The notes under the pieces were generated by a model. The model did not search any database and was not told the origin of the DNA. It worked only from the letters and a program-made list of their open reading frames with translations. Position numbers and translations under genes: made by a program. 64,000 bases of DNA from Mobula birostris (Eukaryota). Where the stretch lies: positions 55,949,450 through 56,013,449 of the forward strand of contig NC_092373.1 in assembly GCF_030028105.1 (NCBI RefSeq). Reading direction: 5' to 3'. This document shows, piece after piece, positions 5,040 to 61,139 of this stretch. Within the stretch, counting starts at the first letter, position 1, and each line of letters begins with the position of its first letter.

Positions 5040-5415
5040 CTTGAACTTTCAATAATTGCTCCCCTCACCTTCATTTCCATTTCCCTCTCTCATCTTATCT
5101 CCTTGCCTATCACCTCCCTCTCGTTCTCTTCCATCTTCCCTTTCTTCCATAGTCTTCTACCCTCTCTTATCAGATTACCCCTTTTCCAGTCCCTTATCAT
5201 ATAAGGCTTATATCCTTCACCTAGCAACTTCCAAGCTCTTTAATTCAACCCTTCCCCTCTCCCGGTTTCACCTATCACCTACCACCCCTGCTCTGACTTT
5301 TCATCCTCTTTTTTTCAGTCCTGATGTAGAGTCTCGGCCTGAAACTTTGACTGTTTACTCTTTTCCATAGATGTTGCCTGGCCTGCTTAGTTCCTTCAGC
5401 ATTTTGTATGTATAT
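5040..5415 (+). mobile_element. Penelope terminal-repeat fragment
   Basis: Pyrimidine-rich tract, decayed hammerhead at 5316-5353, gcctggcctgct...ttccttcagcattttgt tail; homologous to 56280-56680. Confidence 0.75.
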
Positions 5416-7197: not shown

Positions 7198-8075
7198 TGT
7201 TACGTAACTGGCAACAATAAATATCAATCGAGACAGGTTATATAAAAACAACCAAACATTTATTAAACACGGATAAATGATAAAAAAAACACGAAAACCT
7301 TGACTGGAAGTTAACCGCTATGCAGCTGTTCAACAAATAGTCACTCGGCACTAGTTCTTAAAGCGTTAAATGTGAGAACAGTTCTTAAAGCGGTAAAGTC
7401 AGATATAGTTCTTAAAATGGTAAATTTGAAAGTCCAACAGATTTATACGTTCAATTGGGAGGGACTTCTCTGGAGAAGGATTTCTTCATAGACACGACTT
7501 TCCTGCTGGTTCTGTCCAAAGGATTCACGATGCAGGAAATAAACAGTTTAAAACAACTGACCTTAAATTCTAGAGAGCAAACCTTGCATGAACCCTCTCT
7601 CTTTTGGTAAGAGTTATCTTCGATACAGGTCACTACTCCTTCAATGAAGACTCAATAAGGTCGATCCTTTGTTAGACTGCCTAACGAAACCGACTCCTCT
7701 CAATCCTTCGGGTCCTGTACTTTGATTAAGTCTTCACTCTCCCGTACTACTGCTGGAATAAGGTACATCAACACATCTAGCAAAAATTTCCAGTCCCGCA
7801 CTATTGTACCTTGCAATAGAACGTAACAACCGTTTTAAAAATGAAACTGCGTCTTAAAAAAATACGCAACAGAAACGGAAACACAGTACGTTCTAGCTGG
7901 AAATCTAAAAACTAAAAACTCACTGCGTCATCTGGGGTCTTCCCTTATATACCTGTGGTACAGATGTCATCATGTGACCTCACATCAGCGGGAAAATTAC
8001 ATCAGGTGACCTCCAAAAGACCATTACATCATTCTCGCAAAAAGAAAATCACTGATCTCCTTGAGGTATGTAACA
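7198..8075 (-). mobile_element. Solo LTR, 878 bp (Gypsy- or ERV-type)
   Basis: TGTTAC...GTAACA termini; 4-bp TSD CTGT (7194-97/8076-79); removing it restores the CR1. Minus-strand TATA near 7950 and AATAAA near 7262. Confidence 0.85.
7353..7433. repeat. 27-bp tandem repeat x3 inside the LTR
   Basis: Units beginning agttcttaaa at 7353, 7380 and 7407. Confidence 0.85.
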
Positions 8076-8989
8076 CTGTTCATCAGTCACTGAAAGTAAG
8101 CATGCAGGTACAGCAGGCAGTGAAGAAAGCTAACGGGATGTTAGCCTTCATAACAAGGGGAGTTCAGTGTGGGAGCAAAGAGGTCCTTCTGCAGTTGTAC
8201 AGGGCCCTGGTGAGACCACACCTGGAGTATTGTGTGCAGTTTTGGTTTCCAAATTTAAGGAAGGACATTCTTGCTATTGAGAGAGTGCAGCGAAGGTTCT
8301 CGAGGTTAATTCCCGGAATGGTGGGACTGTCATAGTTGGGAGATTTGAGTGACTGGGCTTGTATACACTGGAATTTAGAAGGATGAAAGGGGATCTGATT
8401 GAAACATATAAGATTATTAAGGGATTGGACATGCTAGGGGCAGGAAACATGTTCCCGATGTGGGGGAGTCCAGAACCAGAGGCCGCAATTTGAGAATAAG
8501 GGGTAGGCCATTTAGAACGGAGTTGAGGAAAAACTTTTTCACCCAGAGAGTTGTGGATCTGTGGAATGCTCTGCCTCAGAAGGCAGTCGAGGCCAATTCT
8601 CTAGATACTTTCAAGAAAGAGTTAGATAGAGCTCTTAAAGATATGGGGAGAAGGCAGGAACGGGGTACTGATTGTGGATGATCAGCCATGATCACAGTGA
8701 ATGGTGGTGCTGGCTCGAAGAGCCGAATTGCCTACTCCTGCACCTATTGTCTATTGTTAGAAAGTTGCTACATTTAGGAGTGTTTGGGTCTCTAGATTTT
8801 GGTTTGAGCAAATGTTGCAACCTGCAATTGTACAGGAGGCTGCCTTGAGAAAAGCGGAGTTTTGAAGATGGAAGGATAGATTGTAATGTCACCAGGCTGT
8901 TGGTTCTGTTGTCAAAAAATGAGATTAACTATTGAATGTGATGGCTAGTGGGATAGGTGAGGGTTGGCAGCCCTTTTTTTTGGTGATAG

Positions 8990-10630
8990 GACAGCAAATT
9001 CAGTGATTGCAATAATAACCATAATAGAATCAATGAACGACCACACCCGCTGGGTGTTCAACAAGCGTGCAAAAGACAACAATTTGTGCAAATACAAAAA
9101 GAAAGATAATAAATAAGCAATAAATATTGAGAACATGAGATGAGTCCTTGAAAGCAAGTCCATAGGTTATGGGAACATTCCAGTGAAGCTGAGCAATGTT
9201 ATCCCCTTTGGTCCAAGAGTTTGATGGTTGAGGAGAGTAACTGTTCCTGAACCTGGTGGTGAGAGTCCTGAGCTTCCTGTACCACCTTCCTGATGGCAGC
9301 AGTGAGAAGAGAGCATGTCCTGGGTGGTGGATGATGATGGATGCTGCTTTCCTGTGACAGTGCTGTGTAGATGTGCTCAATGGTGTAGAGGGCTTAACCT
9401 ATGATGGACCGGGGCATGTCCACTATTTTTAGTAGGATTTTCTGTTCAAGAGCATTGTGTTTCTATGCTAGGCTGTGATGCAGCCAGTCAATATACTCTC
9501 CGCCACACATTATAGAAGTTTAAGTTTTAGATGTCATGCTGAATCTTCGCAAATTTCTAAGTAAAGGCACTGTTTTGCTTCCTTTGTAATTGTACTTGCA
9601 TGCTGGATCCTGGACAGATCCTCTGAAATGGTAACGCCGAGGAATTTAAAGTTGCTGAACCTCTCACCTGATACCTCAATGAAGATTGAATCATAGACCT
9701 CTGGTTTCGTCCTCCTGAAGTAAATAATTAGCTCCTTGGTCTTGCTGAAATTAAGAGGTTATTGTTATGGCACCACTCAGCTAGTCACCACCTTTGACTT
9801 GGCCTACAACAGTGGTGTCATTAGCCAACTTGCATTGGAGCTGTGCTTAGCCACACAGTCATAAGTATAAAGTGAGTAGAGCAGGGGGCTAATCACAGAG
9901 CTCGCTGGTGCACCTGTGCTGGTGGAGATCATAGAGATCTCGTTGCCAATCCAAACTGATTGGGGTGTGCTTTTGAGGATTCAATTGTGCATGGACATAT
10001 TGAGGCCGAGGTGTTGGAACTTATAGATTAGTTTTGAGAGGATGGTAGTATTAGATGCTGAGTTGTAGTCAATACAAGCATCTTTGCTGTGTAGATGTTC
10101 TAGGGTTGAGTGATGAGCCAATGAAATGTCAACTGCTGTGGACCTGCTGTGCCGGAAGACAAATTTATTTTATTTATTAAGATACAGCATAGAGTAGGCT
10201 GTTCTGGCCCTTCAAGCCATGCTGCCTCACAATCCCCCAATTTAATGTTGGCCTAATCACAGCACAATTTACAAAGACGAATTAACTTATCAACTGATGT
10301 CTTTGGACTGGGAGAGGAAGCTGGGGCAAAGCCACCTTGTCACAGAGAAGGTATAAACTCTGTACAGGCAGCGGCAGGGTTGAGCCCAGGACGCTGGCAC
10401 TGTGAAGTGTTGTGCTAACCATTCTGCTGTCGGGCCACACCCAATTTGGAGTGGATCTTAGTCACTTCTCAGACAGAGGTTGATCTTCATCACCAACCTC
10501 TCAAACACTTCATCACTGTGAATGTAAGTGCTACTGGACTGTAGTCATTGAGGCAGGTTACCACATCCATTGTAGGTACTGGTATAATTGAAGCAAGTGG
10601 GTACCTCAGACTGCTGAAGCAAGAGTGCAT
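8990..10630 (-). mobile_element. Rex1/Babar-type LINE 3' portion, degenerate
   Basis: HPGHALFSLLPSGRWYRKLRTLTTRFRNS peptide (ORF 9030..9380), typical of the Rex1 C-terminus. Confidence 0.75.
10163..10440 (-). mobile_element. V-SINE (HE1-like) inserted in the Rex1 element
   Basis: tRNA-like head, V-domain cagtccaaagacat, CR1-like tail, (TAAA)n end. Confidence 0.7.
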
Positions 10631-11348
10631 TGTGTATTAGAACAAGAAGCAGCATTGATAAAGTAATAAGCAAACTGGAAAAGTTTGTGATGTGGTCTGG
10701 GTAAGACTGGAACAAATAATATTCTGCACAGAATACAAAATGACAGCTGTAGGTTTACTCCGTTTGGGTTCCTGTAGCAATGATATTGATTTGAAGGAGG
10801 TAAATAAAAGTCCATGGTCAGCAATGAAAGAGTGTCATATGTGATATATTCTTGAAATTAAAACATTTTAAATTTGAAATATTTAAGGATTACAATCCGG
10901 TTTGGTTAGACAGAACTATTGAGTGAGCAGGATGGGTCTCTAGAAAGGTTATGGACAACAGTAATTCAGTAGGCTCGCACGTGTACTGTAGAATGGTTTT
11001 AAAATGGCCAGCAGGTGGCAAAACCAAAGATGACTTCCATGGCAGCTGGAGTGAGTTAAAAGTGGAGGCTATTACAGGGACTTAGATTAAGGCCCTCATT
11101 GGATAGCGTGATATAGTGGTGAAAACTTGAGTAAAAAGAATGCTGGGGTCAACTGTCTGATTCAGCAGAAGGCAAGTCAGAAGATTGCAAGTTTTGGAAT
11201 AGGTGTGCAGGTTGTTCTCTTAGAGACGGTCCTATCAATTGATATATACTGCAGGTCACTTAGTATTGCAGTGGATAGAATTTTGCAGAAAGTGTTGGTG
11301 TTGTCTGTCTTTTGTCTTGAAGTGCCTACTGTAGTTATGGAAGATATA

Positions 11349-16399: not shown

Positions 16400-19300
16400 T
16401 TTGTTGAAAAAATAGGTCTGTATATCTACAACTCAGGTTAACATAGTTTTGTACTTGAAGGTACCTAAAAAAAAAGTCATTGTGTTCTAGGCCATGTTTG
16501 TCCTGCAGGATTTGGAAACTTTGTAATACTCTTTTATCTATAAATGAGAGGTAGGTTGTAAGACTTTATCCATAGCTCAAATCTTTTATCTCCTCTGTTG
16601 GGAAGGAATTCGGTGTCATATGCACACCATCTGAAGAGTTTTAACATGTTATTAATTCCACACGAATTAACCACCTTCTGCCATACTTTCAATGTAAGAT
16701 TTATCCAACTGTTTTTAAATTTTTCCAATTGGACCATCAATCCTTTGTCAGCTATTGAGGCCTGTAGAGGAAAACTGTCAACTAATCCAAATTCTATTTC
16801 CTTCCATCTAGCCTTATATTCCCCATTACACCAATATAACAGAGGGGTTATCTGTGAGGCATAAAAATAATTTCTCAAGCAAGGAAGAACCATACCTCCT
16901 CCTTCCTTCCCTAACTGTAAGGTGTTATATCGAATTCTAGGTTTCTTTCCTTGCCAAATGAAGCGGGAAATCCATTTGTCCCATTCCCTGAATTGATTAT
17001 CATCCACCTCCACAGGTAAAGTACGGAAAAGATACAGTAACCGAGGAAGAATATTCATTTTTATAGTATTTATCCTTGAATTTAAACTTAAAAAGGGGAT
17101 AAGATTCCATCTATGCATATCTGCTTTTATCTCTGAGATTAATGGCCCATAATTTACCTGTGACAGCGTTGAAAGATCCTTCGGTAGGGTTATTCCTAAA
17201 TATTTTAATGATTTAGCTTCCAACTTAAGATCGTATGTATCCTGCAATTTTTTGGATGGTGTATAATTTAGGGACATAACCTGCATTTTCTTTACATTTA
17301 TTTTATAACCTGATATTCTCCCAAAGTCATCCAACAGTGTAAACAAACCTATAAATGATTTTTCTGGTTCACTCAGAGAGATCAAAACATCATCTGGAAT
17401 AACGCCACTTTCTGTTCAATCCCTACCACCTTGATACCTTTTACGATTTCGCTCTGTCTTATTAGTTGGGCAAGCGGTTCAATATATAGCGCAAAAAGGA
17501 GAGGAGAAATTGGGCATCCCTGTCTAGTGCCTCTCTCTAAGATGGAGTCAGAGAGGTCCCCATTTACCTTAATTCGGGCTGTAGGGCTGTCATATAGAGT
17601 CTGAATTACTTTAATAAACTTTTCTTGAAAGCTGAATTTTCCTAACACTCTTTATAGGAATGCCCAACTAACCGAATCAAAAGCTTTCTCAGCGTCCAAT
17701 CCTACTACCATTGTCTCTGTCTCGTTCTTATTAACCTGTTCTAATATGTGTAGAGTTCTCCTTATGTTGTCCTGTCTTTGTCTTTGTTGAATAAATCCAG
17801 TCTGGTCTAAATGGACTTCAGCGATTTGTACCACTCTGAGGTAAACCCATCAGAACCCGGGGACTTTCCAGCCTTTAACCTAGAGATGGCCACGTTCAGT
17901 TCTTTGACAGTTACTGGTTCTAATAAACTTTCATTTTGTAAATCTGTAAGTTTAGGTAGATCTAAAAAATTCAATATACTGTCTATATAGGGCTCATTGG
18001 GGGCCCGGGGTTGGGAGTACAGCTCTCGATAATACGTTTCAAAACTCTCTTGAATTTTCCCTACTGTACTGTCCACAAGCTTTGTCTTTGGATTCTTTAT
18101 TTTATGAATTGTATTGTCTGCTTGTTGTTTTCATAATTTATATGCTAATAATCTAGCTGATTTACCTCCTACTTCATAATTCTTTTGTCTCAGGTAAAGA
18201 AAATTTCTTTGAGTTTCCAATGTATAAATATCGTCAATTTCACTTTGCAACTTCCTAATTTCCTGTTTTAGATTTGAATTACTTTTGTTGCTATCTACAA
18301 CTTGAAGTTGTTTTAATTTTCCTTGAAGGTCTGCTAATTTTTGTGCATTGATTTTTTTCATGTGAGTGGTAATGGAAATAATTTTCCCTCTCAGTACAGC
18401 TTTCAGTGTATCCCATAAGATCACTGGTGATGTTTCTCCCGTGTCATTAAGGTCTAGGTATTCTTTGATTTCTCCCCTTAATCTCTCCATTACTTTTGGG
18501 TTATTGAGTATATGTGAGTTTAGCCTCCATAGTGTTTTCCTCATTTTCCTTTCCAGGATTAGAGACATAGAAACTGGGCTATGATCCGACAGATCAATTG
18601 TTGCAATATTACAGTTTTTTATCCTGAGTCTATCTGTATTAAAGATAAAGAAATAGTCTATCCTTGAATAGGCTGAATGAGGGAAAGAGTAATGTGTATA
18701 ATCTTTACTAATGGGGTGTAATTCCCTCCACACATCTATAATTTCCAACTCCTCCTCCAATAAATTCATTTTTCGAGTCAGAGGTTTATTCTGAGTAACT
18801 ATTCTTGAAGAATCTAATACAGGATTTAATCTGATATTAAAATCCCCTCCACAAATTACTACCCCTTGAGAACTGACCATTAGGTCAAAAAGATGTCTAT
18901 AAAATGACCATTCACATCCTGGAGGAGCATAAACATTCAGCAATGTTATTTCTGTACCTTCTATTCTTCCTGTAATTTTTACAAACTGTCCTTCTTTGTC
19001 TTTAGTCTCTGAAATATGTTCATAATTAAGAGTACTTGATATTAAAGTAGCTACCCCTCTTTTGTGACTCAATTTATATGATGAATAAAATACATGCTTA
19101 AAGCCCATTCTTTTTAATTTTCCATGTTCAGATTGGCTCATATGTGTTTCCTGGAGGAAAGCTATTTGTGCCCTCTCTTTTTTCAATTTAGACATAATCT
19201 TATTTCTTTTAATTGGATTCAAAACCCCATTAACATTATAGGAAATTATTTTTACCAATTCAGTTTGCATTTTTCTCTAGTAGAAAAAAAACACTCTCCT

Positions 19301-20742
19301 TTTCTAACCAAACAGTAAGCAATCCCTTCTCAACAGTAAACCAAGACATATAACCACACCCTAGACATTTTTGAACGTATAACATTTGAAAATTTTTCCC
19401 GACTTCCCACAGTGAGGCCTGAGCACCGACCCGCCTCAGTTCAGAGGGATAACCTCTATCTTCACCCTGTGTTAGAGGGCCCTCAGCAGTTTGAATAATC
19501 ATAGAGAATTTTCTCCTATTTATGTCTCGACCATATTGCTATCATTCAAGTTATTCCGTCTAGTTTATTTTCAGTTACCAGTTTTCATTTTACCTTTAAG
19601 TCCTATTTACTCTTTTCAGTCATTTCTCTTAATTAATCTGTATTCTCTGTACATTCGCGTCTGAATATTTTCAGCTTTTCCTTGTAGCTTGACACTCTGG
19701 TTCATGTGGAGTGTCCTCACCCCACTAACTGCCACAACTTCTGCCGAATCCTCTCTAGTAGTGACTCCGGTTGGGTGATAACTTTGATAGGTAGTCCCCG
19801 GTCCGCCAGGTCCAACGTTGCCTCCTCCACCATAGCGTAAGTTTTTGTCCCTTTATCGTAAAAGACTCTCAGCTGAGCTGGATACAGGGTCTGGAATCTG
19901 ATGTTGTTTTCCTTCAGGACCCTCCGTGTTTCTGTATATTCCTTCCGTCTGGCAAGAATCCCCGGTGCGTAGTCGTGGTCTAAACTGATTTTACAGTTGT
20001 TCCACATGAAACCTTTCTTTTGCCATGCCCGTTTGAGCACCTCTTCCTTCGTTCTGTAACTGAGAAATCTGACCAGAATCGATCTGGGCTGGGCGCCTGC
20101 CGGAGGCTGTGGTGCCAACGCGCGGTGAGCCCTTTCTATCTGTAGGTCTTTTGCGGCCGGTATATCAAGGTTCTGTCTAAGCAGCTTCTTCACGAAGGGA
20201 ATCATCAATCCGGGTTTACCTTCAGTTCCTTCGGGAACTCCGTAAATCCTCACATTTTCCCTTCTTGAGCGGCCTTCTTCATCTATTAGTTTCCACTGGA
20301 GCTGGTCTTGCGGCTTCAGCATTTCTGCTATCACTTCCTCGGCGTTTTGTAGCTTCTCTTCAATTCCAACAATCCTCGCTTCGGCTTCATCTATCCGCGA
20401 GTTAGTTTTTACTATTTCTCCTTTAATATCTTCCAGCTGTTTGCTGTTATCTTGTCGGAACTCGCGAATCTCTCCGAGAATCAAAGACAGAGTCACCGAT
20501 TCCCCCTCATTATCTCCGTCCTGGCTTGCCGTGGGGGAGCTAGGCCCGTTGCCTTGCCGCATCTCTTTGTGTTTATCAGCCTTTGGAGCGGACTTTTTAA
20601 TCTTGTTCTTAGACATCATACTTGCCCCTTTTATTAATATAGTTATGCAATATTAAGTATTTGTCTAAATTCGACTTTGGGGCAGTTTACCTTTTTTGTC
20701 GAGAGACCTTTTCCTTACGCCGCCATTCCCTTGATGACCCCC
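16400..20742 (-). mobile_element. L1-clade LINE with 5'UTR, ORF1 and disrupted ORF2; 3' end missing
   Basis: ORF1 19717..20619 (RSRRENVRIYGVPEG, IERAHR); APE endonuclease 18131..19270 (LQETH, GDFN, SRIDY, SDH); RT pieces 16534..18076 ([16 protein letters not shown]). Confidence 0.93.
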
Positions 20743-24463: not shown

Positions 24464-27460
24464 AAACATAGAAAATAGGTGCAGGGGTAGGCCATTCGGC
24501 CCTTCGAGTCTGCACCACCATTCATTATGATCATGGCTGATCATCCAACTCAGAATCCCGCCCCAGCCTTCCCTCCATACCTCCTGACCCCCGTAGCCAC
24601 AAGGCCCATATCTAACTCCCTCTTAAATAGCCAATGAACTGGCCTCAACTGTTTCCTGTGGCAGAGAATTCCACAGATTCGCCACTCTCTGTGTGAAGAA
24701 GTTTTTCCTAATCTCGGTCCTAAAAGGCTTCCCCTCTATCCTCAAACTGTGGTCCCTCGTTCTGGACTTCCCCAACATCGGGAACAATCTTCCTGCATCT
24801 AGCCTGTCCAATCCCTTTAGGATCTTATACGTTTCAATCAGATCCCCCCTCAATCTTGTAAATTCCAAGGAGTACAAGCCCAGTTCATCCAGTCTTTCTT
24901 CATATGAAAGTCCTGCCATCCCAGGTATCAATCTGGTGAACCTTCTTTGTACTCCCTCTATGGCAAGGATGTCTTTCCTCAGATTAGGGGACCAAAACTG
25001 CACACAATACTCCAGGTGTGGTCTCACCAAGGCCTTGTACAACTGCAGTAGTACCTCCCTGCTCCTGTACTCGAATCCTCTTGCTATAAATGCCAGCATA
25101 CCATTCGCCTTTTTCACCGCCTGCTGTACCTGCATGCCCACTTTCAATGACTGGTGTATAATGATACCCAGGTCTCGTTGCACCTCCCCTTTTCCTAATC
25201 GGCCACCATTCAGATAATAATCTGTTTTCCTATTTTTGCCACCAAAGTGGATAACTTCACATTTATCCACATTAAATTGCATCTGCCATGAACTTGCCCA
25301 CTCACCCAACCTACCCAAGTCACCCTGCATCCTCTTAGCATCCTCCTCACAGCTAACACTGCCACCCAGCTTCGTGTCATCCGCAAACTTGGAGATGCTG
25401 CATTTAATTCCCTCATCCAAGTCATTAATATATATTGTGAACAACTGGGGTCCCAGCACTGAGCCTTGCGGTACCCCACTAGTCACTGCCTGCCATTCTG
25501 AAAAGGTCCCGTTTATTCCCACTCTTTGCTTCCTGTCTGCTAACCAATTCTCCACCCACACCAATACCTTACCCCCAATACCGTGTGCTTTAAGTTTGCA
25601 CACTAATCTCCTGTGTGGGACCTTGTCAAAAGCCTTTTGAAAATCCAAATATACCACATCCACTGGTTCTCCCCTATCCACTCTATTAGTTACATCCTCA
25701 AAAAATTCTATGAGATTCGTCAGACATGATTTTCCTTTCACAAATCCATGCTGACTTTGTCCGATCATTTCACCGCTTTCCAAATGTGCTGTTATCACAT
25801 CCTTGATAACTGACTCCAGCAGTTTCCCCACCACCGACGTTAGGCTGACCGGTCTATAATTCCCTGGTTTCTCTCTCCCTCCTTTTTTAAAAAGTGGAGT
25901 TACATTAGCCACCCTCCAATCCTCAGGAACTAGTCCAGAATCTAACGAGTTTTGAAAAATTATCACTAATGCATCCACTATTTCTTGGGCTACTTCCTTA
26001 AGCACTCTAGGATGCAGACCATCTGGCCCTGGGGATTTATCTGCCTTCAATCCCTTCAATTTACCTAACACCACTTCGCTACTAACATGTATTTCGCTCA
26101 GTTCCTCCATCTCACTGGACCCTCTGTCCCCTACTATTTCTGGAAGATTATTTATGTCCTCCTTAGTGAAGACAGAACCAAAGTAATTATTCAATTGGTC
26201 TGCCATGTCCTTGCTCCCCATAATCAATTCACCCGTTTCTGTCTGCAGGGGACCTACATTTGTCTTTACCAGTCTTTTCCTTTTTACATATCTATAAAAG
26301 TTTTTACAGTCTGTTTTTATGTTCTGCCAGTTTTCTCTCAATCTTTTTTCCCCTTCCTAATTAAGCCCTTTGTCCTCCTCTGCTGAACTCTGAATTTCTC
26401 CCAGTCCTCAGGTGAGCCACTTTCTCTGGCTAATTTGTATGCTTCTTCCTTGGAATTGATACTATCCCTAATTTCTCTTGTCAGCCACAGGTGCACTACC
26501 TTCCTTGATTTATTCTTTTGCCAAACTGGGATGAACAATTGTTGTAGTTCATCCATGCAACCTTTAAATGCTTGCCATTGCATATCCACCGTCAATCCTT
26601 TAAGTGTCATTTGCCAGTCTATCTTAGCTAATTCACGTCTCATACCTTCAAAGTTACCCCTCTTTAAGTTCAGAACCTTTGTTTCTGAATTAACTATGTC
26701 ACTCTCCATCTTAATGAAGAATTCCACCATATTATGGTCACTGTTACCCAAGGGGCCTCTCACGACAACATTGCTAATTAAACCTTCCTCGTTGCTCAAA
26801 ACCCAGTCCAGAATAGCCTGCTCTCTAGTTGGTTCCTCAACATGTTGGTTCAAAACACCATCCCGCATACATTCCAAGAAATCCTCTTCCTCAGCCCCTT
26901 TACCAATTTGGTTCACCCAATCTACATGTAGATTGAAGTCACCCATTATAACTGCTGTTCCTTTATTGCACACATTTCTAATTTCCTGTTTAATACCATC
27001 TCCGACCTCACTACTACTGTTAGGTGGCCTGTACACAACTCCCACCAGCGTCTTCTGCCCCTTAGTGTTACGCAGCTCTACCCATATCGATTCCACATCT
27101 TCCCGGCTTATGTCTTTCCTTTCTATTGCGTTAATATCTTCTTTAACCAGCAACGCCACCCCACCTCCCCTTCCTTCATGTCTATCCCTCCTGGATATTG
27201 AATATCCCTGAACGTTGAGCTCCCATCCCTAGTCACCCTGGAGCCATGTCTCTGTGATCCCAACTACATCATAATCATTAATAACAATCTGCACTTTCAA
27301 TTCATCCACCTTATTACGAATGCTCCTTGCATTGACACACAAAGCCTTCAGGCGCTCTTTTACAACTCTCTTAGCCCTTATACAATTATGCTGAAAAGTG
27401 GCCCATTTTAATGCTTGCCCTGGATTTGTCGGCCTGCCACTTTTACTTTTCTCCTTAGTA
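24464..27460 (-). mobile_element. Young CR1 LINE with an almost complete ORF2 (APE and RT)
   Basis: NARSIRNK and ITETWL (27229..27552), GDFN and SDH (26338..27159), 572-aa RT ORF 24623..26341. One stop near 27229 and one frameshift near 26340; intact 3' tail. Confidence 0.95.
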
Positions 27461-40219: not shown

Positions 40220-41778
40220 GCATAGATAATATTAGGACGAATTAGACCCCCGGGGCCTGACGGAATATTCCCCAGGCTGCTCCACGAGGCGAGTAAAGAG
40301 ATTGCTGAGCCTCTGGCTAGGATCTTTATGTCCTCATTGTCCATGGGAATGGTACCGGAGGATTGCAGGGAGGCGAATGTTGTTCCCTTGTTCAAAAAAG
40401 GTAGTAGGGATAGCCCGGGTAATTATAGACCAGTGAGCCTTACGTCTGTGGTGGGAAAGCTGTTGGAAAAGATTCTTTGAGATAGGATCTGTGGGCATTT
40501 AGAGAATCATGGTCTGATCAGGGACAGTCAGCATGACTTTGTGAAGGGCAGATCGTGTCTAACAAGCCTGATAGAATTCTTTGAGGTGGTGACCAGGCAT
40601 ATAGATGAGGGTAGTGCAGTGGATGTGATCTATATGGATTTTAGTAAGGCATTTGACAAGGTTCCACATGGTAGGCTTGTTCAGAAAGTCAGAAGGCATG
40701 GGATCCAGGGAAGTTTGGCCAGGTGGATTCAAAATTGGCTTGCCTGCAGAAAGCAGAGGGTCGTGGTGGAGGGAGTACATTCAGATTGGAGGGTTGTGAC
40801 TAGTGGTGTCCCACAAGGATCTGTTCTGGGACCTCTACTTTTTGTGATTTTTATTAATGGCCTGGATGTGGGCATAGAAGGGTGGGTTGGCAAGTTTGCA
40901 GACGACACAAAGGTTGGTGGTGGTGTGGATAGTGTAGAGAATTGTGGAAGATTGCAGAGAGACATTGATAGGATGCAAAAGTGGGCTGAGAAGTGGCAGA
41001 TGGAGTTCAACCCGGAGAAATATGAGGTGGTACACTTTGGAAGGACAAACTCCAAGGCAGAGTACAAAGTAAATGGCAGCATACTTGGTAGCGTGGAGGA
41101 GCAGAGGAATCTCGGGGTATATGTGCACAGATCCCTGAAAGTTGCCTCACAGGTAGATAGGGTAGTTAAGAAAGCTTATGGGGTGTTAGCTTTCATAAGT
41201 CGAGGGATAGATTTTAAGAGTCACGAGGTAATGATGCAGCTCTATAAAACCCTGGTTAGGTCACACTTGGAGTACTGTGTCCGTTTCTGGTCGCCTCACT
41301 ATGGGAAGGATGTGGAAGCATTGGAAAGGGTACAGAGGAGATTTACCAGGATGCTGCCTGGTTTAGAGAGTATGCATTATGATCAGAGATTAAGGGAGCT
41401 TTACTCTTTGGAGAGAAGGAGGATGAGAGGAGACATAATAGGGCTGTACAAGATATTAAGAGGAATAGATAGTGGACAGCCAGTGCCTCTTCCCTGGGGC
41501 ACCACTGTTCAATACAGGAGGACATGGCTTTAAGGTAAGGGATGGGAAGTTCAAGGGGGATATTAGAAGGTTTTTTTACTCAGTGGTTGGTGCGTGGAAT
41601 GCACTGCCTGAGTCAGTGGTGGAGGCATCTACACTAGTGAAATTTTAAGAGACTACTAGACAGGTATGTGGAGGAATTTAAGGTGGGGGGGTTATATGGG
41701 AGGCAGGGTTTAAGGGTCGGCACAACATTGTGGGCCAAAGGGCCTGTAATGTGCTGTACTATTCTGAGTTCTATGACT
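40220..41778 (+). mobile_element. 5'-truncated CR1 LINE
   Basis: ORF 40541..41533 with YMDFSKAFDKV, GVPQG and FADD; 3' tail gggcctgtaatgtgctgtactattct. Confidence 0.92.
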
Positions 41779-50947: not shown

Positions 50948-52270
50948 GCAACACACACAAAATGTTGGAGGAACTCAGCGGGTCAGGCAGCACCTACGAA
51001 AATGAATAAGCTGTTGACATTTCAGACTGAGACCCTTCAGGACAGGAAAGGAAGGGGGAAGACGCCAGAATAAAAAGGTGGGGGGAGGGGAAGGAGTACA
51101 AGATTAGAAAGCGATAGGTAAAGCTAGGCTGGTGGGAAAGGTGAAGGTCTGGAGGAGGAGGAATCTGATAGAGTGGACCATGGGAGGAGCAGTAGGGGGA
51201 GGTGAGTAGTAGCTGAGAAGAGTTAAGAAGCCAGAGTGAGGAGTCGAAGGGAAGGGGGGGAAAGAAAAACAAATCCAGAATTAATATTCATGCCATCAGT
51301 GTGGAGGCTATCTAGATCGAATATCCACCCTGGAAAAAGCCCTGTATGAGTCTCCACATCCAACACATTCTCTGCTGCTTTGTTATCTTCAATGGGATCC
51401 TACCACTGACACATCTTTACATTCCCCCCACTTTCCTCTTTCTGCAAGGATTGCTCCTTTCATGATTCCCTTGTCCATTTTCCCTCCCCACTAATTTCTC
51501 TCTTAGCACGTATCCCTGCAAGCAACAGTAATGCTACATCTGCCCATTTACCTCTTCCCTCACCTCCATCCAAGAGCCCTAAACAGTCCTTCCAGCTGAG
51601 GCAACACTTCACTTGCAAATTTGTTTGGATCATCAATTGTATCCTGTACTCCTGATGCATTGCTGAGACCCAATGTAAATCGGAGGAGCACGTTGTTGAG
51701 TACCTCCACTCCATTAGCCAAAAGTGCAATTTCCGAGTGGCCAACCATTTTCATTCCTATCCCTGTTCCCATTTCAACAGGTGGTCCATGGCCTCCTCTT
51801 CTGCCACAATGAGGCCATTCTCAGGATGGAGAAGCAACACTTCATATTCAGTCTAGGCAGCCTCCAACCTGATGGCATGAACATCAATTTATTCTGGTAT
51901 TTTTTTTTTCTCTTTCTTTTTCTTTTCCTTCCCCTCTTCCCCATTCTGGCCTTTTTCCTCTTATTTGCCTATCACCTCCCCCTGATGCCCCTCCTTCCCT
52001 TTCACCCATACAAGGTCAACTCCTATTAGGTTCCTCCTCCAGTCCTTTAGCTTTCCCACTCACATAGCTTTGCCTATCACCTTCTAGCTTGTCCTATTTT
52101 TTAAAAAAAATTTTTGGTGTCTTCCCTCTTTTCAGTCCTGAAGGGGGAGTCTCAGTCTGAAACATGCCTGTTTATTCATTTCTGTAGATGCTGCCTGATC
52201 TGCTGAGTTCCTCCAGCATTTTGTGTGTGTTGCTCTGGATTTCCAGCAGCTGCAGAATCTCTTGTGTTTA
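50948..52270. mobile_element. Penelope insertion with an inverted 5' terminal repeat
   Basis: 50948 to ~51320 is the terminal repeat on minus. ~51340-52270 on plus holds the Cys linker (YPCKQQ*CYICP), an endonuclease remnant and the terminal repeat. Confidence 0.8.
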
Positions 52271-53699: not shown

Positions 53700-56680
53700 A
53701 TCCACAGGAGTGACAGAGCTATCGATTACTTGCCATTTAATTTTCCATCCTACTCCCCCTGACCAGTCAAGGCCCAAGACAAGTGAAAGGAACAACTCAC
53801 CCCGGCAGGCACGGACGTCCCCAGACCGCGATTTCTGTTGCCAACCTCAACGGTTCTAACAATCCCGAGCAGATTCAGAACCCGGACTCCACCGCCATCA
53901 ATGCGGATTCCATCGACTCGGACACTTTCAAAGTGCACATCGCGCTTCCTCCAACTCCGACTCCACCCTGGACCTTGACTGACAGCCCCTCCAGGCCGGG
54001 GCTTTACTTGCTGTTGGTTTCCACTTTCCCCACCACCACTAAAATCCCACGTCACTCTGGTCTCACCGTCAGCTCTTGGGTCCTTGGAGACTCCATCTTC
54101 TTCCCACCCCACCTTCCCTGCAACCCCCAACCCTCTTCCCCCTCCCCCTGATTCCCTTCTCATCCGCGCCGGATCTTCAATATTCCCTCTGACCTTCCCC
54201 TCTCTGACGCAGGACGTTCTGTTCTCAGTAAAGGTTCTCACCTCTATAACCGTGCGCCCACGCCATAGCGAGTTACGCGCCCGCCACAATGCTGAGCTCT
54301 TCTTCCGCCGACTTCTTATGCAAGGTCTCTCCTGCCCGCACGAATAACCCTTCGCCCGTCTTCAGCCCTCCTCTTCTTGTACACCCGCTGTAGTCTTTTC
54401 ATTGCTAATTGTCGACATCAACCACTTGACATTACCGCTCCTCCAATTCCAACCTCACTCCTTCCGAACGCACTGCTCTCTACTCTCTCCGCACTAATCC
54501 TAAACTCACCATCAAACCTGCAGATAGTGCGGTGCTGTAGTAGTCTGCCGGACTGATCTATGCCTTGCTGAGGCCCAGCGCCAACTCTCAGACACCTCAT
54601 CTTACTTACCCCTTGAACAGGACCCCACAAGGAGCACCCTTTGTCACCCGCACCATCATGGACCTTATTAACACTGGGGATCTCCCATCCATTGCCAGCA
54701 ACCTCATTGTTCTCTTACCCCGCACCTCCTGTTTCTACCTTCTACCCAAGATCCACAAACCTACCTGTCCAGGTAGACCCATTGTTTCTGCTTGTTCCTG
54801 CCCACCAAATTTATATCTGCATACCTCGACTCTGTTGTATTCGCCTCCCCCCCCCCCCTACACACACACACCCATCAGTCCCTTCCTACATCCGCAACAC
54901 TTCATATGCTCAGGATCTTTCCAATGATCTCAAGTTCCCTGGCCTCAGTCATCTCATTTACACAATGGACATCGATGCCTCCATCCCACAGCAGGAGGGC
55001 CTTAAAACTCCCCACTTCTCTCTAGATATCAGACTCAACCTATTCCCTTCCACCATCACTCTGCTCTGTCTGGTGGAACTGGTCCTCACTCTCAAAAACA
55101 TTCTCCTTCAGCTCCTTCCATTTCCTCCAAACCAAAGGTGAAGCCATGGGCACCTGCATGAGCCCTAGCTTTGCCTGGCCTTTTGGCTATGTGGAAAAGT
55201 CTGTTCCAAGCCTACACTGGTATCAGTCCTCAACCTTTCCTATGTTACATCGATGACTGCATTGGGGCTGCCTCCTGCACACATGCAGAGCTTGTCAATT
55301 ACATCAACTTTGCCTCCAACTTCTACCCTACCATCAAATTTACCTGGTCCATTTCCAAAATCTCCCTCCTCTTTCTCGATTTTTCTCTCTGGAGACATTT
55401 TATTTATTTACTTATATCTTTTATAAACCCATTGATTCTCACAGCTACCTGGACCATACAACTTCCCACCCTGTCACTTATAAAAATGCCACCTCCTTCT
55501 CTTAGTTCCTCCGTCAATGCCACATCTGCTCTCAGGATGAGGCTTTTCATTCCAGAACTAATGAAATGTCCTCCTTCTTCAAAGAAAGTGGCTTTCCTTC
55601 CTCCACTGTCAATAATGCCCTCACCACATCTCTTCCATTTTGTGCATGTCTGCACTCACCTGATCCTCCCGTCAACCCACCAGGGATAGAGTTCCTATTG
55701 TCCTCACCAACCACCTGAGTAGCCTCCGCGTCCAGCATATATTTCTCTGTAATTTCTGCAATCTCCAATGGAATCCCAGCACCACCACACATATCTTTCC
55801 CTCAATACCCCACCCCCAACTTTCCGCTTTCCCCAGAGATCGCTCCCTACACGACTCCCTCGTAATACCTACCCTTGCAAGGGATCAAGTGCCATACCTG
55901 TCCATACATCTCCTCCCTCACAACCATTCAGGGCCCCAAACAGTCCTTTCGAGTGAGGCAACACTTCATCTTTGAGCCTGCTGGGGTCATCTACTGTATC
56001 TGGTGGTCTCAGTATGGCCTCCTGTATATCGGGTGAGGCCCGATGTAGATTGGAAACCGCTTCGCCAAGCTCCTATGCTCTGTCCGCCAGAAAAAGTAGG
56101 ATCTCCCGGTGGCCACCCACTTCAATTCTACTTCCAATTCCCATTCCAACATGTCAGTCCATGGTCTCCTCTACTGTCATGATGAGGCAACACTCAGGCT
56201 GGAGGAGCAACATCTTATATCCCATCTGCATAGCCTCCAAACTGATGACATGAACATCGATTTGTCGAACTTCCGGTAATTGCCCCCCTCCCCCACCAAT
56301 CCCATTCCCGTTTCCCTCACCTTATCTCCTCACCTACCCATCACCTCCCTCTGGCGCTCCTCCCCCTTCCCTTTCTTCCATGGTGTTCTCCCTTCTCCTA
56401 CCAGTTTCCTCCTTCTCCACCCCTTGATCTCTTTCACCTATCTCTTTACTTCACCCTTCCCCCCCAGTTTCAACTATCACCTACGACCTTGTACTTCTTC
56501 CTCCCCACCCAACCTTCTTGTTCTAACTTCTCATCTCTTTTTCTCCAGTCCTGATGACGTGTCTCGGCTGGAAACTTCGACTGGTTACACTTTTCCATAG
56601 ACACTGCCTGACTTGCTGAGTTTCTCTAGCATTTTGTGTGTGTTGCTTGAATTTCCAGCATCTGCAGATTCTCTCATCTT
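53700..56680 (+). mobile_element. Near full-length Penelope-like element (Neptune-type), frameshifted
   Basis: RT motifs YLLPKIHK..PGRPIVS and YIDD; Cys linker near 55875; GIY-YIG (VIYCI...LLYIG) near 55985-56035; hammerhead-bearing terminal repeat. Confidence 0.88.
56545..56584 (+). ncRNA. Hammerhead ribozyme in the Penelope 3' terminal repeat, partly degenerate
   Basis: CCAGTC-CTGATGA-...-GAAA-CTTC-GACTGG; 6-bp stem I; stems II and III weakened. Confidence 0.6.
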
Positions 56681-57260
56681 TGAATAACTCAGCTGTCTCA
56701 GCCTGTTACAAACTCTGGACTCCACGCTCTGATGGAGCTTTGTCTGCTCCAACTCATCATTCTGCTATTGCTGCCAGTTTTTCTCTCCGTTAGTGCAGTC
56801 TGATCTGCTGGGCATCGCAGTATCTGCTATTAGCAATAAAATATAGACAAAGGAGTTTAACCATGTAAGCTTATTGCAAATATTCTCTTCCCCTTTCTTA
56901 TCCCCCACTGCTTCATTCCAATATGTCATTAACTTTTTTCTTCTCTGTTCTTTCACATTGCCTTTGACCTGAAGAGTTAACTGGATATCTTTCCACAGGC
57001 ACTGCCTGACCTACTCAGACTTTCAGGATTTGTTTTTATTTCGGGATCTACAGTGTTTGCGTTTGATATCTCCTTAGCTAGCAATGAGAGAGTGGGTAAC
57101 CTAATATATGAAGTGTCCCAGTTCTCGTGTAGGTCCTCCCTCATGCGGTTAAATAAGGAGATCCAGGATTTTGACCCGGTGATGAAGGACTAGCAAGCTC
57201 AGAAGTGTTGTCTATGGAGGATCTTTCTTTAGGCACTTGCTGTGCTTGCTAAGCTGCTGA

Positions 57261-57455
57261 GGGGTGTATGGGGTGTCAGGGAGGGGGTAGCACGTCTGGT
57301 GGGGGAACATGTTGCGTCCTTTTCAAGGCAGTTAGTCCGCCTTTGGTCCCCACCTGGAACTCAGCTCTCACCTATGGCTCCTCGTAGCTTTTTGCATGCG
57401 ACAGCGGCCACACCCCGGCAACGGCTTCGACGAGCCGGCTAACCCAGGTGAGGGT
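57261..57455 (+). ncRNA. HDV-like self-cleaving ribozyme, copy 1
   Basis: P1 GGGGTGT(57261-67)/ACACCCC(57410-16); P2 CTCTCACCT(57365-73)/AGGTGAGGG(57446-54); P3 GGC/GCC; L3 TCCTCGT; GG-CAA after P1; P4 CGGCTT/GAGCCG; J4/2 GCTAA with candidate catalytic C at 57439. Confidence 0.75.
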
Positions 57456-57783
57456 GGCCAATGGGTATCAAATAGTCGACAGACTCCGGTGAATTGAGCG
57501 GACGAGACCAATGGAAGGTCCAACGGTCAAGAAGGCGGTCTCTGCAAGCGTCATGGAACATGTAGAGCGCAACAAGACACAAAAGACATCCTGGTCATCC
57601 ACTGCGCCTAGTCCCAACTCCAGCCGTCTCGACTCTGTCTTGCCACTGGATCCAGATGGGAATTGGGAAGAGAGAGTGAGGCTGACGCTACGCAACTCTC
57701 CCTCACTTAAATCCAAATCATGCGCTAGTCTCGACACCAATGGTGTCGAGATCTTCATTGACGACGATGATGGACGAACAACA
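57261..57783 (+). mobile_element. Non-autonomous ribozyme-headed retroposon, ~523 bp
   Basis: Degenerate 11-bp TSD taagctgctga/tgagatgctga; short ACA-repeat tail; no RT ORF; homologous to 58871..59386. Confidence 0.65.
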
Positions 57784-58229
57784 TGAGATGCTGATATGGT
57801 GCAGAAGCCTGGCTTCCTTGCAAATGTGTTCTCTGAAGATGTTAATCTTTGTACCAGTGATTTCAGTCCTAGATAGGTGAAGCTTCTGAAGAATAATAAT
57901 TCCTTAAACTACAGTAAGTACATTGTTTTCAGTATGTATACTGGAATATAGGGTATACTGTAGGTGCAGCACAGATCAGCTGTCCACAGTTCTGATGTAG
58001 GGTTTCAATCCATCCACAGTTCCCATTCTCCTACAGATGCTGCTCAGCCGCTGAGTTCTATTTTCTTGCTCCAGATTCCAGCCTCAGCCCTCTCTTGTGT
58101 CTCCATCTGAAGTCATTTTCTATACTTAATTTCCCACTGCGCCACCATATTATGTATGGTATTGTGCGGTGGATCCAAATGCGCTAAATTGGCTACAGAC
58201 CTTCGCCATTACTGTCTCCTCTGACTTCA

Positions 58230-58399
58230 GCAGGTGGCGTGGAGGGGGGTGAGGCGGGTAAATACTAGGATGGAGCTGGGAACTATGTATACACAGCTCT
58301 TATTTCAGACAAACGATTTTTTTTCCCGCCCCGCTCTGTGATTGACGGAGCTCGTGGCTGAAGCGACGGTCCGTTGCTCGGTTACTGTAGACACAAAAG
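58230..58399 (+). promoter_or_regulatory. WDR49 promoter and non-coding exon 1 with RFX X-box
   Basis: CpG-rich patch; GC box CCCGCCCC at 58325; X-box GTTGCTCGGTTAC at 58373-58385 (reverse strand GTAACC-G-AGCAAC fits GTNRCC-N-RGYAAC); donor AAG|gtaaag at 58400. Confidence 0.65.
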
Positions 58400-58869
58400 G
58401 TAAAGTTAGTAAGAGCCGAACGCAGTGCGCGCCTGACCAGTTTCCAACTTCCTGACTGCAGTGTTTTAACTGGGCGAAAAGGCTCTGGCAAGTATATTTT
58501 TAATGTTTCTAGACTTGTTGCTAATCTATGATTGGGGCGTGATTCAACTCCTCTTTTCAAACAATATTGATAAACGTTTTTTTTAAGCTTAGGTAAATGA
58601 GAGTGTTGATTTTTTTCCTGCGCATTTGCAGGTATTGTGGGGTCGACCCAGAACTTGGCATTTTTGTTCGTAGTTTAGCGGCTCATTCTTCACCGCGTGC
58701 TTCATGTGATTTATGTATACCTTAGCCTTGCATTTGGAAATGAGGATCTATTGGAATTGTTTGGTGGGTCGAATATGTCGGGCGGACCTGAGACTAAAGG
58801 AGATGAGAAACAGATTTAATTGTTACCTGATGAGTAGGAGGAGGCTTGCCTAACTAGACCTTCTAAACT

Positions 58870-59073
58870 AGGGTGTATGAGGTGTCCAGGGAGGGGTAAC
58901 ACCGCTGGTGAAGGAGGCTTATCCTGTCCTTTATGGGTCAGCTCAGCTTACTCACCTTTGGTCCCCATCGGACACTCAACCCTCACCTGTGGCTCCAAGT
59001 AACTGTTTGCATGTGGTAGCAGCCACATCCCGGTACTGTACACCGCTTGGACAGGCGGGCTAGACCAGGGGAG
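58870..59073 (+). ncRNA. HDV-like ribozyme, copy 2 (G1 missing or replaced)
   Basis: P1 (A)GGGTGT/ACATCCC(59025-31); P2 CTCACCTG/CAGGGGAG; P3 GGC/GCC; L3 TCCAAGT; GG at 59032-33; P4 CCGCTT/AGGCGG; G-C-TAG with C at 59060. Confidence 0.65.
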
Positions 59074-59386
59074 ATAAGGGAATGCCTGTCCCAGCATGAG
59101 AAGGCAGCTCCGGCGGACTGGGCAGCTGAGATCTGCAGGGAGATCCAGCCGCCAGGAAGGTGGTACTGCAGCGCTTCGTGGAGAGCGAAGAGCAGGACAA
59201 GGAACAGAAGACGTCATGGTCAACCACAGCTACCAAGGAAGACCCCAGTTTGTGACGCTTGTTCGTACCACAGGACCCGGATTTCTGAGGCTGAGAGAAT
59301 TGAACTGCCCAGTACAACGGCTTTTCCACTTTAAAGACTCTCCCGCACAGGTTTTCTGTCATCGTCGGAGACAATGGGCAACCACC
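58871..59386 (+). mobile_element. Second, diverged ribozyme-headed retroposon, ~516 bp
   Basis: Shares the 5' ~200 nt architecture with 57261..57783; possible short TSD aaacta/aagcta; CCA-repeat tail. Confidence 0.6.
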
Positions 59387-59591
59387 AAGCTAGATCATTT
59401 GTTTAAGTAATGCATGAAAGTAACGGTTTGTTGAGTTCTGAAAATCACATTTTATAGATGTATTTCTGTTGTTCCTTAAAGTCATCATAACGTTAAAATT
59501 ATATAATTTCCTCAAAAGAAGATCTTTGTTTTCTTCAAATTTGTGTTCAGCCCTATGTAGTGTAGTATTAATACATTTACTATATTTTTGT

Positions 59592-59901
59592 GGGCACGTG
59601 GCCAAGTGGTTAAGGCATTGGACTAGCGACCTGAAGGTCGTGAGTTCGAGCCCCAGCAGAGGCAACGTGTTGTGTCCTTCAGCAAGGCATTTAATCACAC
59701 ATTACTCTGCGAGGACACTGTTGCCAAGCTGTATGGGTCCTAATGCTCTTCCCTTGGACAACATCAGTGTCGTGGAGAGGGGAGACTTGCAGCATGGGCA
59801 ACTGCCTGTCTTCCATATAACCTTGCCCAGGCCTGCGCCCTGGAGAGTGAAGACTTTCCAGGTGCAGATCCATGGTCTTGCAAGACTAACGATGCCCTCT
59901 C
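59592..59901 (+). mobile_element. tRNA-derived SINE with a CORE-like segment
   Basis: A box TGGCCAAGTGG, B box GTTCGAGCC; perfect 13-bp TSD actatatttttgt (59579-91/59902-14). Confidence 0.88.
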
Positions 59902-61139
59902 ACTATATTTTTGTTTAAGTTTTTTTTCCTGAGGTCAGACAAGTATGAGCTTGAACATGAGTGGGTGGAGTGAAGTATAAAGTTACTTTGTTTCCTGCTT
60001 TTGGCTGTTAACATAGGGGGTGACAGTAAAATAGTGTAAACTGTGATTGCAGACTGCTTCCAGTTTGATTATATTCAGCAGTATATTCCAATGTGTGACC
60101 ATGCAAGTAATGTGCACATTTGAAAGTAGACTGCATTCAGGAAAAGGTGATGATTGATACAATCCTCAAGGAGAGTGGAAACAGACAGCCAAATCCACCC
60201 AGGAGCACAGTGTTTGTAACTGCCAGCCACATTCCTATGTATTCAAGTTTACTTCAAATGGTTTCTGTGTGTTATGATCTTAATTCCAGTATAACAATAA
60301 CAAAACTTTCATTTTGATAATCAGCAATAATCTCTAGCTGCACATTTTAAGGAGATGGAACATTCTGGATAGTTGCTCAGAATGGGAAAAAAAATAGCTT
60401 TATGAACCCTATTTTCTTCCATCTCGTTCAGAATGACTGTCAGTTAACATAGGTCATATTTCTCCTTTGTCCCTGAGAAGCAAACTGTAAAATCTCAAGG
60501 AATGGACATGGGTGATAGTATATTGACTTGAAATGCCATAATTTGGGACTCAGCAAGACATCAGGTAAACCAAACAGATGTTTGCAAGTAGAAATAGAAG
60601 TGCTTCTTCACCTTGCTAAAGGTAAGTCCATTGTTGATGTGTTTAAATCAGAAAGTGCAGGTTGTTTACTGGTGGCAGCAACATGATCATCTGTGCATAG
60701 GTTCCAGTTATTTATATTCATTCTAGGCTTTAAACAAGAGGTCAGAGAGATTTTACTAGCTCTCATAATCTTTTTACCTGTTAAACATGCCCACTGATGG
60801 TCGGCCCTCTTACAACACAGCCTGAATAACTAACTGCTAGCTTCAATAAATTACATTTGCACACTGCTGTGAACATCGACTCTTGCCACAACAAAAGCTT
60901 ATGAATAAGTATCCAATTTGAATTGGGTGTTGTATGGAAACTGCCTGCAGGCCACAAATTTAAATAATTAAGTGTCAAAGCTGAAACTCTATGCCAAAAC
61001 TGTTTTTATGTATTCTTAAGTAAAATCTGGCAAAATTTTATAATAAATCTTCAGTCACAGTCACAAATGTATTTCATGAGGGTAAACTGCTGGCTGCTTT
61101 TTTTGTTCGATTGTTGACAGACCTTAGAGCATTTGAAGA

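Follow-up and report, generated by a model that had tools for sequence, protein, structure and literature searches.

Positions 57261-57455 of a 64,000-nucleotide (nt) stretch of Mobula birostris DNA (the window; contig NC_092373.1, positions 55,949,450 to 56,013,449 of the forward strand) carry the complete layout of a ribozyme of the hepatitis delta virus (HDV) type, with an extra hairpin between its loop L3 and the 3' strand of helix P3. This sequence is probably the self-cleaving head of a non-coding retroposon of about 528 nt, derived from a long interspersed nuclear element (LINE). An earlier note, made from the letters of the window, had proposed an HDV-like ribozyme with a helix in L3. 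That interpretation was partly borne out, by the layout, by the position of the fold at the 5' end of an element, by conservation and by the conserved hairpin of the insert; it was not borne out by covariation. The helix at the L3/P3' junction is probably a new structural variant of what is otherwise a known arrangement, a short LINE-derived element with a ribozyme head.

All the elements of the HDV nested double pseudoknot were found on the forward strand in the canonical order P1, P2, P3, P1.1, P4, as the earlier note had it, and all the helices are also present in a second copy of the element (copy 2, 58871-59387 (+), with its head at 58870/58871-59075). The 5' strand of P1 (57261-57267, GGGGUGU) forms seven Watson-Crick pairs with the 3' strand (57410-57416, ACACCCC); the latter reads ACAUCCC in copy 2, giving one G.U pair. 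The peripheral domain J1/2 (57268-57364) is structured, as had been said, in the form of a single long closed hairpin, and measures 97 nt instead of the approximately 95 nt first given. P2 is built from 57365-57374 and 57445-57454, within which 57365-57373 and 57446-57454 form nine pairs, one of them G.U; copy 2 contains an internal A-G mismatch in this helix. The top of P2 had been flagged as mismatched (57374-75 against 57443-45). An A.C is indeed found at 57374/57445 in copy 1. The family majority, which was derived from contigs of four public runs that match 57150-59450 with at least 80% likeness, has G57374, which pairs with C57445 and thus removes part of this caveat. P3 (57376-57378, GGC, with 57407-57409, GCC) has three pairs, all three invariant and present in both copies.

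The letters associated with HDV chemistry were located in the same way. The single-stranded part of L3 (57379-57386, UCCUCGUA; UCCAAGUA in copy 2) starts with UCCUCGU (57379-85), and the genomic HDV ribozyme has UCCUCGC in this loop. The U and G that are conserved in L3 correspond to U57379 and G57384, and C57380 and C57381 are the partners for P1.1. The GG of P1.1 (57417-18) and the CAA of J1.1/4 follow P1 at 57417-57421, and the two pairs formed, C57380-G57418 and C57381-G57417, are also C-G pairs in copy 2, where J1.1/4 is longer by six letters. P4 (57422-57437) is a hairpin of six pairs with a 4-nt loop that appears in the unconstrained fold too. J4/2 (57438-57444) reads G-C-U-A-A-C-C, or GCUAGAC in copy 2, and places C57439 at the position of the catalytic cytosine. 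Its start, GCUAA, is presumably that of the antigenomic HDV ribozyme.

The descriptor given in the available part of PMC6326823 consists of a G1-Y pair at the cleavage site, a P1.1 of two C-G pairs, U..CG in L3 (with a reverse U/G wobble) and CRRA in J4/2. Copy 1 has the pair G57261-C57416 at the cleavage site (Y = C), the two-pair P1.1 and UCCUCG in L3. Copy 2 departs from the descriptor at the cleavage site (A.C), and its L3, UCCAAG, keeps the U and the G and loses the C. The J4/2 of copy 1 consists of C57439-U-A-A and a further CC before P2'; its second letter is U where CRRA has R, and CUAA fits the stop codon found at this place in R2 elements, as far as the R2 literature at hand describes it. 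The stop codon is UAA at 57440-57442 and UAG at 59061-59063 in copy 2, and it closes an open frame that runs through the ribozyme.

The feature that sets this fold apart is the hairpin behind L3. In HDV-like ribozymes, L3 is usually 7-8 nt long. A short, helix-free L3 was not found here; eight loop letters are followed by a 6-bp hairpin with a 7-nt loop and then by one more letter. The 21-nt insert previously placed between L3 and P3' at 57386-57406 was confirmed at those coordinates, as was its homolog in copy 2 at 59001-59021. The hairpin itself occupies 57387-57405 (+), with a stem of 57387-92 and 57400-05 and the loop UGCAUGC at 57393-99, and G57406, an A in copy 2, is the spacer before P3'. 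With the letters of copy 1 the stem has just three contiguous pairs, and with the family-majority G57390 it has 6 bp. Given majority letters and folded alone, the inserts of both subfamilies took up a 6-bp stem with a 7-nt loop, at -6.6 and -7.0 kcal/mol; given the window's own letters, they reached only -2.9 and -1.2 kcal/mol and formed other pairings. The nucleotide U27 of HDV is extruded and dispensable, and the insert had been read as a helix grafted at that position. This holds only approximately. Since the hairpin comes after eight L3 letters and is followed by a one-letter spacer, it is a helix at the L3/P3' junction that replaces no loop letter.

We also considered whether the insert hairpin could be the real P3 and L3. 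This was rejected on inspection, since its loop has no CC for P1.1 and the 12 and 4 letters left unpaired on its flanks themselves pair as GGC/GCC. The hairpin loop (57393-57399) contains the self-complementary hexamer GCAUGC. In copy 2 the loop is UGCAUGU (59008-59014), with GCAUGU in place of the hexamer. The sequence UUUGCAUG is unchanged between the copies despite an overall identity of only 67%. Loop-loop dimers could arise through the hexamer.

The fold lies at the exact start of a repeated element. A 6-nt target-site duplication, TGCUGA, was found at 57255-57260 (+) and again at 57789-57794 (+); any one 6-mer would be expected in the searched zone by chance with a probability of approximately 0.013. 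These flanks define the element of copy 1 as 57261-57788, about 528 nt, so that its 5' end coincides with the predicted cut site. The body and tail (57456-57788 (+)) hold no enzyme domain, and a 9-bp stem-loop, seen both as an inverted repeat and in the hairpin fold, is located toward the 3' end (57729-57751). Copy 2 is more decayed than copy 1 and had no flanking duplication of at least 4 nt. The two copies are 67.6% identical over 364 aligned positions and 80% identical over the 79 nt from the end of J1/2 to P1' (57340-57418), and they are alike from the predicted cut site onward and unlike upstream of it. For copy 2, the family boundary falls at G58871, which corresponds to G57262 of copy 1. 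Directly before this base, run X10 has 66 contigs that pass into unrelated A+T-rich sequence. At the other end, 100 contigs of run X5 diverge after 59387.

The same public runs showed how abundant the family is. In four runs from four organisms, 10,539, 9,712, 5,036 and 11,240 contigs fell on the two copies at a likeness of at least 80%. The summed depth was at least in the tens of thousands across the greater part of copy 1, thousands over copy 2 and approximately 5-10 over unique spacer, and it rose and fell at the ends of the element, with a drop after about 57784. Depth and boundaries together indicate that an element of about 520 nt is dispersed in very large numbers and starts at the predicted cleavage site. 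Within the window, which contains no N, only the two copies were found by blastn with a word size of 7 and by a covariance model of the core with filters off. When collections of metagenome, viral and genome contigs were scanned with a pattern of L3 plus the insert, the number of matches was 0. A few contigs of single-copy depth join 57415/57416, the end of P1', directly to 59308 in the 3' part of the element, among other joints. These deletion forms have no P4 and no P2' and, therefore, no complete ribozyme.

The strongest evidence for the structure came from the majority letters of the family, which were compared with each copy. Among the best-supported 40 of 405 differences, copy 1 departs from the majority at 57294, 57313, 57339, 57358, 57374, 57390 and 57432, and copy 2 departs from it at 58904, 58949, 58979, 58981, 59002 and 59017. 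Six of the majority letters in this best-supported set sit in core helices, and all six restore a pair. In copy 1, these are the G57374 already described (present in run X1 at a depth of 142,708 of 143,799), G57390, which pairs with C57402 in the insert stem, and A57432, which forms a U-A pair with U57427 in P4. In copy 2, U58981 pairs with A59074, and G59002 and C59017 pair with C59020 and G59005, respectively, in the insert. Since copy 1 is off the family majority at the helix positions 57374 and 57390, this particular copy may be weakened. Copy 2 is more damaged than copy 1.

Next, the layout was compared with chance. A strict descriptor was written that calls for a P1 of 7 bp, a P2 of 7 bp, a P3 of 3 bp, UCCNNGN in L3, GG after P1', a P4 hairpin and the C of J4/2, with J1/2 limited to 120 nt or less and the L3 insert to 30 nt or less. 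Its sole match in the window was the locus at 57261, and only one of 100 dinucleotide-shuffled windows had any match (mean 0.01). The HDV-type layout is thus real and rarer than expected by chance. When one mismatch was allowed in P1 and P2, the descriptor also matched copy 2 and, on the minus strand, a single unrelated locus. Shuffled windows gave 1.36 loci each under these looser terms and, therefore, the match to copy 2 is not significant alone. A descriptor without any L3 insert gave zero matches in the window.

Folding and alignment of the two copies were also examined. Forcing P1 and P3, or P2, P3 and P4, costs only 1.8 and 2.9 kcal/mol, respectively, over the unconstrained minimum. J1/2 folds at -32.1 kcal/mol in copy 1 as it stands in the window, at -43.4 kcal/mol with majority letters and at -42.6 kcal/mol in copy 2. 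Across the two copies, 61 of 68 cells hold standard pairs, compared to 38-52% when the partners are slid by 1-3 columns. One pair of P4 (57423-57436) is G-C here and C-G in copy 2, a compensatory change, and four one-sided changes keep pairing (two U-A/U.G in P4, one in P1 and one in the insert stem). The copies differ at 25% of positions in the core, 31% in J1/2 and 43% downstream (57456-57660), and paired columns change less (15/68) than unpaired columns (39/127). Coding was considered as the cause of core conservation and rejected. Substitutions are spread over the three codon positions as 18/19/17, and so even a spread means that the core is not conserved on account of the open frame that crosses it. 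A protein from an ENA assembly (P0002) reads through the ribozyme core in one frame; it was not used as evidence since its third codon positions are unknown.

Several results weigh against a ribozyme at this position. Minimum-energy folds were no better than those of shuffled sequences (copy 1, z = +0.63; copy 2, z = -0.90), and in unconstrained folds with majority letters some of the L3 letters pair with part of the insert. The covariation to which the earlier note had looked as a check amounted, with two copies aligned, to the one compensatory pair in P4; no compensatory change between the copies was found in P1, P2 or P3. A double-sided change occurred in only one of 34 pairs, and column shuffles reached the observed values in 260-376 of 500 trials, so that covariation has no statistical support because just two sequences were aligned. 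The comparison with Rfam that the note had also suggested returned no HDV-type family at the gathering score or at E ≤10. The HDV-type models (HDV_ribozyme, CPEB3, drz-Agam and others) gave no match at any threshold tried, which comprised the gathering score over the whole window and E up to 10 over 56500-60000 and over 57255-57460 alone (206 bases). At the level of single letters, copy 1 has G-C and copy 2 has A.C at the cleavage site, where G.U is usual, the C before the conserved G of L3 is replaced by A in copy 2, and the CUAACC of J4/2 is 1-2 nt longer than the CRRA described in the accessible text of PMC6326823. Also, the second GGGGUGU discussed below lies within the closing helix of J1/2, and the repairs by majority letters were drawn from the best-supported 40 of 405 differences, with minority variation outside them.

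Many of these points would suit a different reading, in which the head is a 5' untranslated region whose structure is conserved for a different function; it might act as an internal promoter, bind a LINE protein or serve as a translation element. It would be non-catalytic, and the 5' end of the element would be a transcription start. The lack of an Rfam match, covariation that is not significant, unremarkable fold energies and the non-canonical cleavage-site pair and J4/2 all agree with it. 5' heads can also do other jobs: according to the available part of PMC3383444, the same 77 letters of L1Tc serve as both promoter and ribozyme. We nevertheless regard a non-catalytic head as unlikely. The letters needed for HDV chemistry (U..CG of L3, CC/GG of P1.1 and the C of J4/2) are all present in copy 1 and most of them in copy 2, a match to the strict descriptor is rare by chance, and the P3/L3 letters are nearly those of proven R2 ribozymes, as far as the accessible R2 sources go.

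A further alternative is an HDV-like ribozyme in another register, with a longer P3 (GUGGC/GCCAC, or one including U57379-G57406) and a shorter P1 and P2, or with a cut at 57270, or with the insert acting as an off-switch. The 5' strand of P1 is doubled, 9 nt apart (57261-57276, GGGGUGU-AU-GGGGUGU; 58870-58885 in copy 2, AGGGUGU-AU-GAGGUGU). With GGGGUGU at both 57261 and 57270, P1' has two possible partners and the descriptor returns two registers, the second at 57270, so this second strand could compete for P1'. Some unconstrained folds extend P3 into P1' and P2; in that of copy 2 with majority letters, P3 grows to seven pairs stacked on the hairpin. The pairing of L3 letters with the insert in copy 1 with majority letters points the same way, and the letter at 57406, G in copy 1 and A in copy 2, is in either case able to pair with the L3 U. 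Against this, the nine letters before 57270 are kept as element sequence in both copies, so RNA that ends at 57270 cannot be the propagating form, and in each subfamily the insert, folded by itself, does best as the 6-bp hairpin. This alternative seems quite improbable. That a G+C-rich repeat merely happens to fit a loose motif is scarcely credible: although the loose descriptor gives 1.36 loci for each shuffled window and, in the real one, picks up another locus on the minus strand, the strict one matches in only one of 100 shuffles, the fold starts exactly where a family represented by thousands of contigs has its 5' end, and majority letters repair its helices.

We return to the more probable reading, a self-cleaving ribozyme that begins at G57261. 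In the mechanism we propose, the element would be transcribed within a longer host or read-through transcript, in which the nested double pseudoknot (P1, P2, P3, P1.1 and P4) would form. The active site would be built by C57439 of J4/2 and the core of L3 (U57379, C57380-81 and G57384), and the RNA would cut itself 5' of G57261. An RNA cut in this way would start at the first base of the element and could enter reverse transcription as such. If the mosquito ribozyme Agam-2 is a guide, the 97-nt hairpin of J1/2 would draw P1 and P2 together in a pinch, and the 6-bp extra hairpin would probably point away from the active site, where it may be tolerated or may aid folding.

If the head does cleave, several consequences follow. 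Searches for HDV-like ribozymes assume a short L3; if a helix at the junction is compatible with activity, part of the family escapes them and the structural rules of the delta active site need widening. It is possible, and we suggest it tentatively, that the delta fold tolerates or uses a helix in the catalytic loop as a three-way junction at P3, that an abundant subclass has been missed by short-L3 models, and that the hairpin has a role in loop dimers, in binding a LINE protein or as a switch. The GCAUGC loop could then mediate RNA-RNA loop pairing or bind a LINE protein, linking cleavage to packaging, and pairing between the extra hairpin and L3 could serve to turn the ribozyme on or off. 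The design of a ribozyme head on a LINE tail is known, and here it occurs at very high copy number in a vertebrate. If active, the family may be among the most abundant vertebrate ribozymes, since at least four related species would each have thousands of copies in the genome. Copies are located within genes, and any that had kept their activity would cut host pre-mRNAs. If the head does not cleave, it would show that a full delta-like layout is possible without catalysis, which would be a useful warning.

The rest of the element was searched for signs of its parentage. It is a short, non-coding derivative: within its 528 nt, an open reading frame (ORF) of 91 aa at 57511-57783 matched no Pfam family. 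A search for proteins homologous to this ORF was empty, and nine relatives of it were found among 1.84 billion representative proteins. Three of the nine are molluscan (Elysia marginata twice and Dreissena polymorpha), and the others come from Logan and ENA assemblies. Also, a 134-nt block of the element (57597-57730) is 75-80% identical to three LINE-like metagenome contigs from ENA assemblies, at 2135-2232 of L001, 1-109 of L002 and 3050-3184 of L003. These contigs share only this block with the element, and no ribozyme was found in them. The translated block also resembles predicted proteins of the molluscs E. marginata and D. polymorpha. In L001, approximately 300 nt separate the block from a downstream ORF whose beginning resembles that of an apurinic/apyrimidinic endonuclease. 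This ORF scored 22 bits with Pfam Exo_endo_phos, below the cut-off of 24.5, and an atlas look-up placed it in an endonuclease family of eukaryotes. Judged by the position of the block, the short element seems to have retained a LINE's 5' region, to which, in our reading, a short 3' tail with the stem-loop is joined; a parent LINE was not seen in this genome. Either the block of approximately 130 nt belongs to a LINE 5' region that is conserved very widely, or it was passed horizontally between marine animals.

Other repeats surround the two copies. LINE fragments were seen at 16534-20619 (-), 24623-27159 (-), 6031-7059 (+) and 40541-41533 (+). One of these fragments has an ORF1-like ORF and an endonuclease ORF (Pfam Exo_endo_phos, E = 6.6e-14), and several have reverse-transcriptase ORFs (RVT_1 at 24623-26338, E = 2.9e-33). 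None has sequence in common with the ribozyme-headed element. ORFs at 54565-55686 were considered as reverse-transcriptase fragments and rejected, as they had no Pfam hit. Approximately 200 nt past copy 2, a tRNA-like stretch (59592-59654) scored 21.8 bits with the Rfam tRNA model, below the gathering score of 29 bits, and ARAGORN found no tRNA there; it was the sole Rfam hit in the neighborhood and is probably the head of a tRNA-derived short interspersed nuclear element. Another abundant short repeat is located at 58066-58105, where depth is in the thousands (58074-58150) and a consensus made from loose ends contains CUGAGUUCCUCCAGCA. A similar direct repeat pair of 67 nt (52168-52234 and 56581-56647) is 82% identical and contains CUGAGUU.CUC.AGCAUUUUGUGUGUG.

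Phrase searches of the literature found no description of a helix in the L3 of an HDV-like ribozyme, although 'L3' is not a searchable term and a printed precedent is possible. In the part of PMC3774820 available, a mere change of L3 spacing in the R2 element of the jewel wasp is already termed a substantial deviation. Compared to the genomic and antigenomic HDV ribozymes, the fold described here has the same order of helices, the same start of L3 (UCCUCG) and the same P1.1 of CC and GG. It differs in a far larger P1-J1/2-P2 region, in the extra L3 helix and in a genomic instead of viral context, and the HDV_ribozyme model does not match it.

The mosquito ribozyme Agam-2 offers a parallel for J1/2. 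A structured J1/2 activates large HDV-like ribozymes, and a P1.2 'pinch' domain speeds Agam-2, according to the accessible portion of PMC4908430. In both systems a long helix closes J1/2 beside P1 and P2, and here this is a closed hairpin in both copies. The present fold has no sequence likeness to Agam-2 and no Rfam Agam match, and an extra helix in L3 is not described for Agam-2 in that portion of the source.

A close likeness is to the ribozymes that R2 and other LINEs carry. Situated at the 5' end of such elements, these HDV-like ribozymes process RNA from upstream transcripts, as stated in the available parts of PMC7761336 and PMC3774820. In those systems, too, the nested double pseudoknot makes up the first approximately 200 letters and the predicted cut falls at the first base of the element. 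Insofar as the sources at hand describe them, they also share the long, variable J1/2, the conserved P3/L3 sequence CUCCUCGU and the stop codon in J4/2, which occurs in 18 of 19 Drosophila R2 elements in the accessible text of PMC3414825. With the majority G57374, our GUGGC-UCCUCGU nearly equals the primer for the R2 catalytic region given in the same text. In contrast to R2, a 19-nt hairpin and a spacer stand between L3 and P3', the insertions are dispersed (for example, in introns) and not specific to a site in ribosomal DNA, the cleavage-site pair is G-C, and the ribozyme here is a predicted one.

Short relatives of such LINEs are known as well. The short deletion elements (SIDEs) of R2 retain the ribozyme, and the SIDEs, like NARTc and TbRIME of trypanosomes, are moved by the proteins of the parent; both statements are found in the available part of PMC3414825. 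According to that text, these elements are short and non-coding and keep the 5' ribozyme and the 3' terminus of the parent LINE, as our element may do. Those systems are rare, as with the R2 SIDEs, or protozoan, whereas the element described here reaches 5,036-11,240 contigs per run in four organisms.

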